From: Syncephalis fuscata S228
Lineage: Eukaryota > Fungi > Zoopagomycota
Assembly: GCA_025786725.1 (NCBI GenBank)
Contig: JAHLTZ010000018.1
Location: 439,867-503,866 of the forward strand
Direction of reading: 5' to 3'
Length of the DNA stretch: 64,000 bases
Shown here: piece after piece, positions 1-58,144 of the stretch
How the letters are laid out: the number at the start of each line of letters is the position of its first letter
How positions within the stretch are numbered: position 1 is the first letter of the stretch
The notes under the pieces: generated by a model
Told to the model about the DNA's origin: nothing
Databases searched by the model: none
Seen by the model: the letters and a program-made list of their open reading frames with translations, nothing else
Made by a program: the position numbers and the translations under genes

Positions 1-100
1 TTGTTGGCGGTTGGGTTTGAGGATTTGGTAGACCAAATACTGTAGCGAGACTTGATAAACCAACAAGGCAAACACCCAACAAAATAGTAGTGAACTTCAT
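1..100 (-). CDS. Secreted protein, N-terminus only (runs off window edge); probable member of the adjacent secreted family
   Basis: Manual translation from ATG at 100 gives MKFTTILLGVCLVGLSSLATVFGLPNPQTQPPT. This is a signal peptide followed by QPPT, as in the 5237-5842 protein (RPQNQPPT). Same strand as the cluster. Confidence 0.65.
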   Translation of the reverse strand, partial: MKFTTILLGVCLVGLSSLATVFGLPNPQTQPPT

Positions 101-819
101 GGTTTCTAATGGTATTTAGATAAATAGAATAGGTAGGTTTTCTTGTATGACTCAATGGTGTAAATAATGGAAATGTAACAAAGCACTTTTAAGATTAAGA
201 AATGGAAAGAGTATGACATCCTTCTTCAGCTGGCCGCCTTAAGCTAGCATTTATGTGCTGTAATATCTAACGCTTCCACAGAAACGTTATAAATACGTCA
301 GCAGTAGACTATTTAGTACAGCGTTCATATAGATAAAAATATGTTTACAATGATGCAGGTGTGCACCAATGAAAATGGGTTCATGTGTACAAGGTAAAAC
401 TAATAGTCACTTCAAAGGTTTGGCTTTTTTATGATGGAAATTCTTAGTATCATAAATAAAAAGAATTTGGAAAATTAAATGTATTCGATAAACGTTTAGA
501 GATGGAATTGAATAAGTTAAAGTCATATAATAGCGTTTGTTTAAATACTAACCGTGAGTATTTATACCAATAGTAGCACATATATATAAAAGTCATTAAT
601 AATGATAACGCAGCAATGCAGATGATATATACACGATTCACTAATCAAGCAATATTTAATAGATATAAGCGCGTAAATTTAATTTATATCAGGTTTAAAT
701 ATAGTAACATGCATTTTTTATAAAAACATTGTAACATAATTTATAAATTATACCAAAAAACTATATTTCTGCATTAACACCAACCAATTAAAGTCATTAT
801 ACTTTGCCATATATTTTTG

Positions 820-1249
820 TTAAAATAAATAAACATCTAGTGTTCATTAGTAATGTTAAGTGTGTACTTGTATAGATTCTATCTTAAACTAGCATAGACT
901 GCTTTGGTTATTGTTTTAAGATTGCATCGTTGTCAATGTATTTGTTTTTTTAAAAATCCATGCGTAGCATATAGCTATCTGTTTAATTATATATAATATT
1001 ACGATGGTACATACTGCTTAGTTTAATATTTGATGAACGCAAATTATTAGCCAACAATCGTTGAATTCTAGCTAATATAATTACTATTATAGCAAATAAT
1101 ATATTGCATTTGTATAGTAATCAATAGCTATAGAAGCACATATTATGCATGATAAAAAACAAAATTGGTTATTTAAACTTTTATTCAATGATTTCTTTTC
1201 AATGAATCGATAGCAGTTTACACTGTACTTGTTCAATTACATTATAGAT
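820..1249. repeat. ~430-bp direct repeat, copy 1 (3' flank of the 1297-2058 gene)
   Basis: Near-identical to 4706-5134 (TAAAATAAATAAACATCTAGTGTTCATTAG...GTTCAATTACATTATAGA); only a handful of differences seen by eye. Confidence 0.95.
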
Positions 1250-1296
1250 AATCATCTACTCCTCATTTCCGCTGTTCAGTAAAAAGTTTTCCTTTT

Positions 1297-2058
1297 CTAA
1301 ATAACTTCCTCATCCATATCATCCATATCATCAGCAATGGCATCATTCTGATCAACGATATCATTATTATGGCCTGGAATATCTTCATCGTTACCACGAC
1401 GATTCAATGATCGACGTTTGGCACTAGCTACACAGGTACCATAGTATTGGAGATCTGGGACGGAGCAGCTAGATCCTGAAACACAAATAGTGTTTTCGTT
1501 GTTACATTTGCCACCAACTGCAACGCTCAGTAAACAAGTGGTGGGTTTCCCAGCTGATATGGAGGCACATACCAATCCCATATGGGGCGTGCATGTAAAA
1601 AGACCACCATTGACATTACCACATGCTTGACTGTGGCCAACTTGGGTGCCTCCCGATACCGGGCTAGCAGTAGATGCAGGTACAGGATCAGATGGAGGGC
1701 TAGGGCGATGGCCGGTTGTTGGGCCAAAACCAGCTATACAGATACCAGTTGGGTGACCGGGCTTAATGTCGCAGGTAAATCCGTCGGCACATTTAGCGTT
1801 CTCGTGATTGCATTCGCCATTGAGAGTTGAAACAAGGAGGCAAATTTTTACATTAGCTCCTAGCATGGTGTCGCACTTGCTTCCTGCTGGACAAGGAAAT
1901 TCAGTGCTATCGCCTTTATCGCATTCGTCACCACGCTTGGAAGGTGGACGCCGTTGGATACTTGGGGTTTGTGGGCCACTTGGACGTGCATCAACACTGA
2001 CGGCTAGAACGGCCAACACAGTGGCAAATTTGGCGATGCTGGATAGAGTGAGCTTCAT
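1297..2058 (-). CDS. Secreted Cys-rich protein: signal peptide + two 8-Cys modules (A-A) + acidic tail
   Basis: True start is MKLTLSSIAKF at 2058, by alignment with paralog starts. Two units C-x9-C-x5/7-C-x10-C-x9-C-x6-C-x5-C-x10-C separated by a Pro/Ser linker; KR/RR sites flank the modules; intronless. Confidence 0.92.
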   Translation of the reverse strand: MKLTLSSIAKFATVLAVLAVSVDARPSGPQTPSIQRRPPSKRGDECDKGDSTEFPCPAGSKCDTMLGANVKICLLVSTLNGECNHENAKCADGFTCDIKPGHPTGICIAGFGPTTGHRPSPPSDPVPASTASPVSGGTQVGHSQACGNVNGGLFTCTPHMGLVCASISAGKPTTCLLSVAVGGKCNNENTICVSGSSCSVPDLQYYGTCVASAKRRSLNRRGNDEDIPGHNNDIVDQNDAIADDMDDMDEEVI

Positions 2059-56100: not shown

Positions 56101-56247
56101 ATATAAAATATAATTATTGTTTATTAAATAAATACTGCCAGCATTAATGATAATCCCTATAGCAATTAGTATAGACGCATAGTTTATTTTGATAACAAAT
56201 TAGAATGATACTGAAAGGACAACAAAATGAAATAGTTAGAAAAGCGC

Positions 56248-57030
56248 TTATTTAGCCATTGCGTATTTTTTGGTCCATTCTTTGGCCGTTTTGTTAAACT
56301 TGCTAATATCAGATCGATACTGTTCGGCAATCTCTGCTTCTAATGGATCATCTGGATTTGGATGCTCCAATAAAGTGGCCACTGCCGCCAATACTAAAAG
56401 ATATGAAGAAAATAACCATGAGTAAATACATGTACAGTCAATGGATATGTGTTTAATTACCATCAAGTATAGGAGTAGCAGGTTTCCAGCTATCAGGCTT
56501 CAATAAATCCATACAGATTGCGCCTTCTTCATCGATGTTAGGATGATAGACCCGTGTAGCAAATTTAATCTATAATAGCATCGATAATTAGACATCACGG
56601 GACTTACAAGCATGCAATCGACTTACAGCTGGAGGCTTAAAAGGAAAGTCCTCTGGGAATCGAATATCTAGCTTAAAGTTGCCGTTCTTATAGGGACCAT
56701 CAGACTAGAATGACTTGTTAATCTACTATACAGTATAGTGGGACCAAATATACTAACCGAGCCTCGAAGAACGCCTAACGGATAAGGAGAACAAACACAA
56801 TGTATTAGTACAATGAGTGGAGACGCGTAAGTGCAGCATTCGTATCGCTTCAGTAACGCTTACCTCGCCAGTGGAATAAAGTCTCATCGCTCACAGGATC
56901 TACTGCAAGACCAGGAACTGGATTGGCATGACAATTGGCCAGCTCCTATCGTCATAGCTATAGCATATAACAGATGCAGGGAAACTAAACAGCTTACCTT
57001 GGTGATGCGTCGTAATGCTTTGTTGGCCAT
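56248..57030 (-). CDS. Ubiquitin-conjugating enzyme E2 (Ubc4/UBE2L3-like), 6 exons
   Basis: MANKALRRITK|EL, GPYKNGNFKLDIRFPEDFPFKPP, TRVYHPNIDEEGAIC (active-site Cys), WKPAT, PNPDDPL, AKEWTKKYA. Confidence 0.95.
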
Positions 57031-57460
57031 AGTGTAGATTGATACTATAAACGATACGTGCGAAAGAAAGAAGCCTAAAGAAAAAAGATTGACTGTTGTT
57101 GCTTCGTAATGTTAAGTAGAAATAGAAAGGACAGGATACGCAAGATACACAATTTGAAGATCATGTGTGTAATGGTGATGGTATTTAATTGTTTAAATAC
57201 ATTCGTACACGCACACGCACACAAGCATGCATAAGAACAAGTCAGCCATACAATTACACTTACACTCAGACCTACACATAGTGACGCATGGATCTATAAA
57301 AGAATAGCTACTAGGGGCATATACCGCAAAGGGCAGTCACTTGTAACAATGACGAACAAAGGGTTGAATCATTATTGTTCATCTCGATAAGCGTTGGTAG
57401 CCATCTTGATGGTATAGTATATATTTTTACCACGTTTATTTAAAAAGCAATGATATTAAA

Positions 57461-58144
57461 CTAACATGAAAACCAATTGCACACAAGAGAGCGTACCCAA
57501 GTTTTAGCAGAGCGAGCCTTTGCAGCAGCAGTAGCGATGAGTGAGGTTTCATAATCTTTCTTTGGTAGTGGTTGATCTTGACGGTATTTCTTTAGGCCAC
57601 CGTTGCATGAAACATAAATGATACTACGGTCGTTGGGGTCTTTGTCTGCTGTATAAGGCGGCGCCAAGCTGTCTTGATAGAGATATTTGCAATCGGAAAA
57701 GTAGAATTTGCCGTTTTTTAGTACAAAATACGATCCATCACTGCCATACAGTTCATTTTTGTATCTTTTGTAATAGATGGCTTCATTGGATGTCGCAACA
57801 TCGGCACGACGTGTCAAGGCGCTGCGCTGTGGATCAACACACTGGCCCAGTCTACTACCAGGTACTTTGGCGCAAGAAAGTCCTTTGTCACACACAATAT
57901 GGTTGTTATCGCAAGGATCTGCGACCGGAGCAACATAGACGCATTTTGATTGTTGGTGGTTCGGCACTCTCATACATTTCAAATTCTGTTGAGGTATACA
58001 TGAATAGCTAACGTCATTGACTACACCACAGTCAAGGCCAGGACCAACCAACTGGTTAATATTTTGGTTAATTACTTTTGTACCAAACGTAAGGCCTGTT
58101 TGAGTAAGTGCTCCTAAGGCTATATAGGAGAAATAGATCTTCAT
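57461..58144 (-). CDS. Secreted A-B protein: signal peptide + 8-Cys module + RR site + module B + amphipathic Cys-terminated tail
   Basis: C-x9-C-x7-C-x10-C-x9-C-x6-C-x5-C-x10-C is identical in spacing to the second modules of the cluster proteins. It is followed by YGSDGSYF..FYFSDCKY..CNGGLKKYRQDQPL; intronless. Confidence 0.9.
   Translation of the reverse strand: MKIYFSYIALGALTQTGLTFGTKVINQNINQLVGPGLDCGVVNDVSYSCIPQQNLKCMRVPNHQQSKCVYVAPVADPCDNNHIVCDKGLSCAKVPGSRLGQCVDPQRSALTRRADVATSNEAIYYKRYKNELYGSDGSYFVLKNGKFYFSDCKYLYQDSLAPPYTADKDPNDRSIIYVSCNGGLKKYRQDQPLPKKDYETSLIATAAAKARSAKTWVRSLVCNWFSC

Follow-up and report, generated by a model that had tools for sequence, protein, structure and literature searches.

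How does a single fungal locus come to encode the same two protein modules singly, in duplicate and fused to each other, and what may the encoded proteins do? The question is raised by a stretch of 64,000 nucleotides (nt) of the Syncephalis fuscata S228 genome (contig JAHLTZ010000018.1, positions 439,867 to 503,866 of the forward strand). The whole stretch is called here the window, and plain coordinates refer to it. A preliminary description, made from the DNA sequence alone, had reported in the window six minus-strand genes encoding secreted proteins, built from two modules, A and B, in different combinations. All six open reading frames (ORFs) are present on the minus strand, and the A, A-A, A-B and B architectures all exist in the genome. 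With slightly better than even confidence, the products are regarded here as small, non-enzymatic, secreted proteins which form a lineage-restricted family in this fungus, and as binders acting on the host fungus. A mycoparasitic habit had been only supposed at first. The organism is a member of the Zoopagales, and Syncephalis species are called obligate mycoparasites in the background section of PMC13188720.

The six genes are listed below. Intact ones are denominated according to their first coordinate.

1297-2058, minus strand: g1297, A-A gene, 253 amino acids (aa); signal, KR site, A1 (1732-1935), Pro/Ser linker, A2 (1426-1635), KRR..RR sites, acidic tail; modules placed by ORF and Cys pattern
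3204-3858, minus strand: A-B gene, broken in the assembly; recognized by three-frame reading and profile pieces
5237-5842, minus strand: g5237, A-A gene, 201 aa; signal, A1 (5537-5737), Gly/Pro/Ala/Thr linker, A2 (5240-5446)
22409-22855, minus strand: g22409, B-only gene, 148 aa; signal, Asn/Tyr/Ser/Pro-rich spacer, B (22430-22645)
51837-52181, minus strand: g51837, B-only gene, 114 aa; signal, KR, B (51858-52082)
57461-58144, minus strand: g57461, A-B gene, 227 aa; weak signal, A (57833-58042), linker with RR site, B (57557-57784)

Sequence features of the two modules

Module A is about 68 aa long. Eight Cys residues are invariant in the alignment, a Gly is nearly so, and the Cys spacing, C-x9-C-x5/7-C-x10-C-x9-C-x6-C-x5-C-x10-C, is almost fixed. 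The eight Cys presumably form four disulfides. The two halves of the module have been matched to each other by profile-profile comparison, and hhalign aligned them with 96% probability (E 2e-9) and with the Cys in register. Because of this match, module A is considered to have originated by internal duplication of a four-Cys hairpin unit of about 33 aa.

Module B, about 72 aa in length, is rich in Tyr and Phe. Alignment of the three intact copies highlights one conserved Cys pair and 22 invariant columns, which include the motifs YG[ST]DGSYF, [FY]YF..CKY and KKY....PL. Modules A and B are unrelated to each other when aligned, and a combined A+B alignment was discarded, because MAFFT pulled the B modules onto A columns.

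Within the window, module A is found twice in g1297, twice in g5237, once in g57461 and once, split by a frameshift, at 3204-3858. Module B is intact in g22409, g51837 and g57461, and decayed at 3204-3858. Members range from 114 to 253 aa; those bearing module A have 12 to 16 Cys, those made of B only 2 to 4. The C-terminal end of g57461 is a predicted helix closing with two Cys. Similarities among the members were measured in six-frame searches of the whole 29.4-Mb S. fuscata genome, and are for both modules far above chance: g5237 matches g1297 with E 3e-50, the A profile finds every module A copy at E 1e-22 to 1e-27, and pairwise E-values of module B are 6.5e-10 and 1.7e-8.

Signal sequences, transcription and introns

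Every member begins with a hydrophobic stretch, and in five of the six a small-residue site is located at position 24. For signal peptides only a heuristic was applied (hydrophobicity and the -3/-1 rule). By this measure the N-termini are signal-like, as had been anticipated, that of g57461 being the weakest.

Transcription has been monitored at window positions 1-6000 by using one public run, X1, which is available as contigs and whose RNA nature is a guess. One contig (1259-2165) spans all of g1297 and extends 107 nt upstream and 38 nt downstream of it, collinear and gap-free. Another (3293-3800) covers the broken A-B copy, and many are found over g5237, spanning 5108-5944. The intergenic DNA of the same region has zero cover, a low-depth 169-nt piece at 4009-4177 excepted. 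Since gene bodies are covered and spacers are silent, which provides an internal control, the pattern of the run is transcriptome-like. Three family members (g1297, the broken copy and g5237) are transcribed, and the condition named in the preliminary description as refuting, that the genes are not expressed, does not apply to these three.

The genes had also been said to be intronless. This is directly visible in g1297, because the RNA-like contig is collinear with the genome and free of gaps; for the other members it is indicated by open single ORFs, equal in length to proteins found in the public protein collection.

The broken A-B copy

In the assembly, the gene at 3204-3858 is interrupted inside module A by a frameshift, located in a run of As at 3664-3668, and in module B by a stop at 3438-3440 and by a second frameshift. 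The decayed B is marked by weak profile matches, collinear through three successive frames. The RNA-like contig differs from the assembly for one extra base after 3663 and for substitutions at 3667 and 3444. In the minus-strand reading, both the frame and the correct Cys spacing of module A are preserved by the extra base, and the 3667 change is synonymous. The stop where B begins is in turn retained. The expressed form consists of signal, intact A and linker, and ends eight residues into B, the remainder of which decays downstream. The frameshift at 3664-3668 is either an assembly error or an allele. The copy had been described as disrupted; this is true of module B, but the frameshift in A is absent from the RNA-like contig, and the copy is transcribed with an intact A. 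The locus shows an A-B gene becoming an A-only gene, that is, the loss of B in progress.

Relatives and predicted fold of module A

Relatives of module A were sought by an exhaustive HMMER search, in which an eight-sequence A profile was run against 1.84 billion representatives. The search returned 103 matches, 36 of them at E <= 1e-10. The best are small proteins with signal-like N-termini, carrying one to four full A modules. All matches with an organism name come from Zoopagales mycoparasites, namely Thamnocephalis sphaerospora and three Syncephalis species (S. fuscata, S. plumigaleata, S. pseudoplumigaleata); the remaining ones come from unnamed metagenomes or read assemblies. Weaker matches are long proteins made of the repeated four-Cys unit, and several of the weaker matches are probably bacterial or from other eukaryotes.

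No member reaches the threshold of any Pfam family, and none matched a catalytic family in the Pfam scans. The only Pfam match of members at E <= 1 was to CAF-1_p60_C (17.1 bits, cut-off 27); it falls in the low-complexity spacer of g22409 and has been rejected as a chance match. Searching Pfam with 44 modules gave sub-threshold, short matches to IGFBP (15 modules), EB (14), Dickkopf_N (12), CBM_1 (8) and others. As had been noted at the outset, neither module A nor module B is recognised as a named domain, and no Pfam threshold is passed by either.

The preliminary description had also proposed a structural search by AlphaFold and Foldseek. The AlphaFold2 model of module A obtained from a 44-sequence alignment is all-beta and confident (predicted local distance difference test, pLDDT, 88.4; predicted template modelling score 0.68). 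Foldseek found in the PDB no match to it at E <= 0.001. In an exhaustive structural alignment, the top-ranking proteins were the N-domains of IGFBP3 and IGFBP4 (Z 4.4 and 3.8), Dkk1 (3.8), colipase (3.5) and the spider protein SIBD-1 (3.1). Neighbours of module A in the ESM Atlas are Cys-repeat proteins of Myxococcota (best TM 0.67), and further neighbour clusters carry Dickkopf_N, EB, IGFBP or colipase families. Two relatives have automatic UniProt labels, P0023 as IGFBP N-terminal domain-containing and P0008 as Dickkopf N-terminal cysteine-rich domain-containing protein; these labels reflect the same weak resemblance as the structure and Pfam matches. Judging from the model, module A would be placed in the broad class of IGFBP-N/Dickkopf/colipase/EB-like disulfide-rich binding mini-domains, as an undescribed family, member of none of the named ones.

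Module B as an orphan

Searches of a collection of 5.8 billion proteins, made with a B-only protein, with the B region of an A-B protein and with a three-protein profile, retrieved only the proteins encoded in the window, or none, with the limit that word-index searches for B can miss distant kin. Only these same proteins, or none, were found in JGI metagenome contigs (pattern and tblastn searches), in PDB sequences (profile search) and by protein-atlas feature searches. In the whole S. fuscata genome, the B profile detects only the three intact window copies and one duplicate, found on contig C341 and described below. Module B is provisionally regarded as an orphan, apparently species-specific. 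Its four copies, three intact and one decayed, are all located within 56 kb of one contig. The single-sequence AlphaFold2 model of the A-B protein is unusable (pLDDT 42.7), apart from a hint that B may be made of two beta hairpins.

An origin of B by overprinting or frameshifting of A-coding DNA was considered and rejected, neither profile having matched alternative frames of the DNA encoding the other module. A more speculative idea, to which we attach low confidence, is that module B is young, was born in S. fuscata, and has been tried out behind an older secretion cassette, either by itself or as a fusion following the ancient module A, from which it is separated by a dibasic cleavage site. 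If this were true, birth, fusion and loss of a domain could be seen live in one effector locus of an early-diverging mycoparasite.

History of the locus

The genes g1297, 3204-3858 and g5237 form a tandem array of three units of about 1.8-2.0 kb, the promoters and 5' untranslated regions (UTRs) of which are about 70% identical. Located 17 kb off, g22409 shares with the cluster genes about 460 nt of upstream sequence (promoter and 5' UTR) and the start of the signal peptide. Farther upstream (1.0-1.7 kb) of g5237 and g22409, homologous blocks of about 200 nt, at 6863-7044 and 24332-24536 respectively, are 71% identical. DNA homology of g22409 with the broken A-B copy is found also inside B (61% over 145 nt), and the B of g22409 is the nearest protein relative of the decayed B. 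Because upstream, signal and B DNA are shared with the broken copy, g22409 would most simply derive from a cluster-type A-B gene through the loss of A.

A phylogeny of module A pairs the two A2 modules as sisters (100/99) and groups the A of the broken copy with the A1 type. The A of g57461 is found elsewhere on a long branch, so that the two A-B genes do not have sister A modules in the free tree. A tree in which these two are held together was not rejected by the approximately unbiased (AU) test (p = 0.097). Repeated shuffling and one fusion followed by losses are therefore equally compatible with the data. The mix-and-match by repeated shuffling put forward in the preliminary description is thus not shown: the free tree separates the A modules of the A-B genes, but their union is not rejected by the AU test, and g22409 fits simple loss. 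B may have been fused independently to two A lineages, as the free tree would have it.

The family had further been thought to evolve rapidly, which is not shown by the data. Synonymous divergence between the A-A paralogues is about 1.2 (dS, saturated), nonsynonymous divergence about 0.43 (dN), and the dN/dS ratio is 0.36, or 0.44 for the mature non-Cys codons (Nei-Gojobori); the paralogues are hence old and moderately constrained. Positive selection between them finds no support in a ratio of 0.36 with saturated dS. The A-A proteins are about 50% identical and their promoters about 71%. The pattern seems to be the usual one of a fixed Cys scaffold with variable loops.

One stretch of the array departs from these figures.

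811-1285: 3' flank of g1297; shares 97% identity over 451 nt with the g5237 3' flank (4697-5146)

The flank is not a dispersed transposon, as just two copies of it are found in the genome. Because only these two are hosted, the flanks look like the result of recent local homogenisation, or gene conversion, of a mostly untranscribed spacer outside the coding regions.

Family members elsewhere in the genome

The description of the family as dispersed across the window holds for the copies listed above, but the family is not confined there, as genes with module A are found also on other contigs. A-only genes are carried by contigs C320, C333 and C138/C307, the last with several near-identical copies, and broken pieces are found on C268. 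Contig C1 encodes P0036, a protein of 402 aa in which two A modules are joined to a long Pro/Thr-rich stalk; the P0036 sequence annotated from S. fuscata is 100% identical to the product encoded on C1 over all 402 residues, in agreement with the assignment of this genome to that species.

The near-identical A-only genes (108-121 aa) are located at C307:141019-144432, C307:177983-178258 and C138:532-816. They are accompanied by a conserved neighbouring ORF, in direct and inverted copies, and constitute a second, recently amplified cluster of the family.

The intact A-B gene recurs at C341:51193-54426, within a 3.2-kb stretch 99.2% identical to the contig end (window 55-59 kb) and inverted with respect to it. 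The encoded protein differs from the g57461 product by one amino acid. This copy is probably due to assembly redundancy or to a very recent duplication, may be a haplotig, and was not counted as independent.

Proposed role and alternatives

The different architectures would have been generated by local tandem or segmental duplication of a unit comprising promoter, signal peptide and modules, followed by gain, loss and decay of modules. After entry into the secretory pathway, the proteins would fold as disulfide-rich binders that resist proteases. Some modules would be held in tandem on Pro/Thr-rich tethers; others would be cut at KR/RR sites by a Kex2-type protease, and single modules would be set free. 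Released or tethered, the modules would bind outside the cell a ligand located on or in the host fungus, be it a wall polymer, a membrane or a protein. The A, A-A, A-B and B combinations would be tolerated and persist because each module would act alone.

Both types of connection are found in the family. Linkers rich in Pro, Thr, Ser and Gly are found in g5237, and as a long stalk in P0036. Dibasic KR/RR sites separate the A modules of the relatives P0007, P0008, P0016, P0020 and P0021; in g1297 they immediately precede A1 and follow A2, in g57461 they lie in the linker that joins A to B, in g51837 they flank the module, and in g5237 none is found. The members are smaller than 300 aa, Cys-rich, signal-like at the N-terminus according to the heuristic, and below all Pfam cut-offs, features which place them in the class of candidate effectors. 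What the analysis shows are the modules with their copies, the range of taxa, transcription for three members, the model obtained for A and the history of duplication; secretion, disulfides, Kex2 cleavage, binding function and host target are what we infer from sequences and models.

Some points weigh against a family of host-directed binders. Secretion, disulfide pairing, cleavage and a binding partner are predictions from sequences and models. The heuristic used to call signal peptides is crude, and hydrophobicity is weak at the N-terminus of g57461. With structural matches as weak as those of module A (Z < 5), its fold class amounts to no more than a resemblance. The taxonomic range is drawn from the few matches that carry a name, many others coming from unnamed metagenomes. 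Finally, the contig-stored run X1 is RNA by guess, and may derive from growth with or without a host.

Among the alternatives, the proteins could be antimicrobial or toxin-like peptides of the knottin or defensin type, which damage membranes or block enzymes or channels of hosts or competitors, rather than adhesins or binders. In favour of this, antimicrobial peptides, amylase inhibitors and inhibitor-cystine-knot peptides can be superposed on the second half of module A with a root mean square deviation (rmsd) of 1.0-2.0 Å over 29-33 residues, and weak sub-threshold Pfam matches to toxin and tachystatin families were seen. Small size, a signal-like N-terminus and the abundance of RNA-like contigs over g5237 also suit peptides of this sort. 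We nevertheless consider this unlikely. Each half of A has four Cys, as against the six required for a cystine knot; the superpositions on knottins score Z 2-3 only, and the family matches are below the Pfam thresholds. Tandem modules on Pro/Thr tethers, and the 400-aa stalk protein P0036, better suit binding modules.

P0036, in which two A modules are coupled to a long mucin-like Pro/Thr stalk as in wall proteins, may also be taken to indicate that the family provides structural proteins of the wall or spore surface of the parasite itself, or adhesives of its merosporangia. Restriction to the Zoopagales would then reflect morphology, not parasitism. Moderate purifying selection (dN/dS as above) and the cover of the genes in a run not necessarily including host contact fit such a function. 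The named homologues are all from mycoparasites, which speaks for parasitism, yet all named Zoopagales among the matches are mycoparasitic, and the point does not discriminate. On the whole, a structural role is judged distinctly improbable.

Very unlikely, in our opinion, is that the proteins are precursors processed by Kex2 into diffusible signalling peptides, active between parasite cells or towards the host: this would fit the regular dibasic sites of the five relatives quoted above and those flanking modules in g1297, g57461 and g51837, but several members, including both g5237 modules, have Pro-rich linkers devoid of such sites, and the folded domains of 68-72 aa that would be released are larger than the typical Kex2-processed peptides (KEPs).

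Binders acting on the host fungus are kept as the favoured interpretation, at the modest level of confidence given at the beginning.

Neighbouring genes

A probable seventh member had been suspected at the edge of the window.

1-100, minus strand: 5' end of a neighbouring gene, ATG at 100; completed from adjoining DNA (L017:8491-8967)

The product is a secreted-type protein of 158 aa with a signal-like N-terminus and three Cys, and an RNA-like contig covers 1-385. Both module profiles score negative against it; the protein has neither A nor B and is not of the family.

Housekeeping genes nearby had been reported to carry introns. The Brr2/SNRNP200 helicase gene, split over several ORFs, is consistent with this: the spliceosomal helicase of this type is encoded on the plus strand over at least three long ORFs at 28330-34283, an arrangement suggestive of introns. 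The housekeeping context also includes a Pex24p-like gene (25275-26828) and a BTB-domain ORF (62543-63619).

Comparison with known systems

Lineage-specific families of cysteine-rich secreted proteins are common in parasitic fungi. The literature on Syncephalis secreted cysteine-rich proteins and on fungal Dickkopf-like effectors was searched, and nothing describing the present family was found; the family is undescribed in the literature searched and is, in kind, a lineage-specific small secreted cysteine-rich family. The finding overturns nothing. The most unusual element is the orphan module B, along with the fact that modules can be seen to be gained and lost at a single locus, and B is a clean case for the study of origin, fusion and decay of an orphan domain. 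To our knowledge, almost nothing is known about the molecular action of Zoopagales mycoparasites on their hosts, and a defined, expressed, putatively secreted family provides concrete candidates for work on the host interface. Among named sequences, the 8-Cys module is common only to Syncephalis and Thamnocephalis. Module A could be entered in the domain databases, which at present either lack it or wrongly call it IGFBP or Dickkopf.

Of the known domains, the closest in structural comparisons is the IGFBP N-domain, or SIBD (PF00219; 7wrq_B, 2dsp_B, 3zxb), which is, as module A seems to be, a small all-beta disulfide-rich secreted binding domain. The two share the local hairpin motif C-x5/6-C-xx-GLxC, and about 53-61 residues could be aligned at the Z values reported above for the two IGFBPs and SIBD-1. 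The best PF00219 score is 15.8 bits (E 0.022), against a cut-off of 28, and mostly concerns profile positions 36-55 only. The IGFBP N-domain has 12 Cys and a GCGCC motif, whereas the 8 Cys of module A follow a duplicated 4+4 pattern, and GCGCC is absent from the listed A sequences. Module A is in addition fungal and Zoopagales-restricted, and an IGF-like ligand is not expected.

Proteins of the Dickkopf/colipase/MIT1-prokineticin type (PF04706, PF01114/PF02740; 3s2k_C, 1eth_B, 1imt) resemble module A as modelled for the finger-like beta hairpins held by disulfides. They are secreted, bind proteins or lipid interfaces, and match A structurally over about 58-68 residues. The resemblance is weak: A superposes on Dkk1 with an rmsd of 5.1 Å over 58 residues and on colipase with an rmsd of 7.0 Å over 61 residues, at the Z values already given, and Foldseek E-values are >= 0.08. 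Best scores are 16.5 bits for PF04706 (cut-off 25) and 16.7 bits for Colipase_C, PF02740 (cut-off 23.7). The colipase fold has 10 Cys, module A 8.

The fungal CBM1 domain (PF00734; 1cbh) is a four-Cys wedge of about 35 aa, often found on Pro/Thr-rich linkers, and resembles half of module A. Its Cys spacing, C-x10-C-x5-C-x9-C, is close to that of each half. Matches, found in 8 of the 44 A modules, are again weak: the best E is 0.0072, scores are about 11.6-11.8 bits against a cut-off of 20.6, and are confined to profile positions 14-24, an 11-residue stretch; the Foldseek TM is 0.61 when normalised to the target.

KEPs, known from fungal secretomes, are similar to P0007, P0008, P0016, P0020 and P0021 in featuring a signal followed by repeats split by KR/RR. 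Unlike in KEPs, the units are predicted folded domains of 68 aa and not short peptides, and many members feature Pro-rich linkers without dibasic sites. The family also resembles the lineage-specific small secreted cysteine-rich candidate effectors of plant-pathogenic and mycoparasitic fungi, in size (under 300 aa), signal, Cys content, absence of a known domain, tandem duplication and restriction to a narrow parasitic lineage. Unlike these, the family described here is made of defined modules, which recur one to four times in proteins of several Zoopagales and are joined, in one species, to an orphan module.

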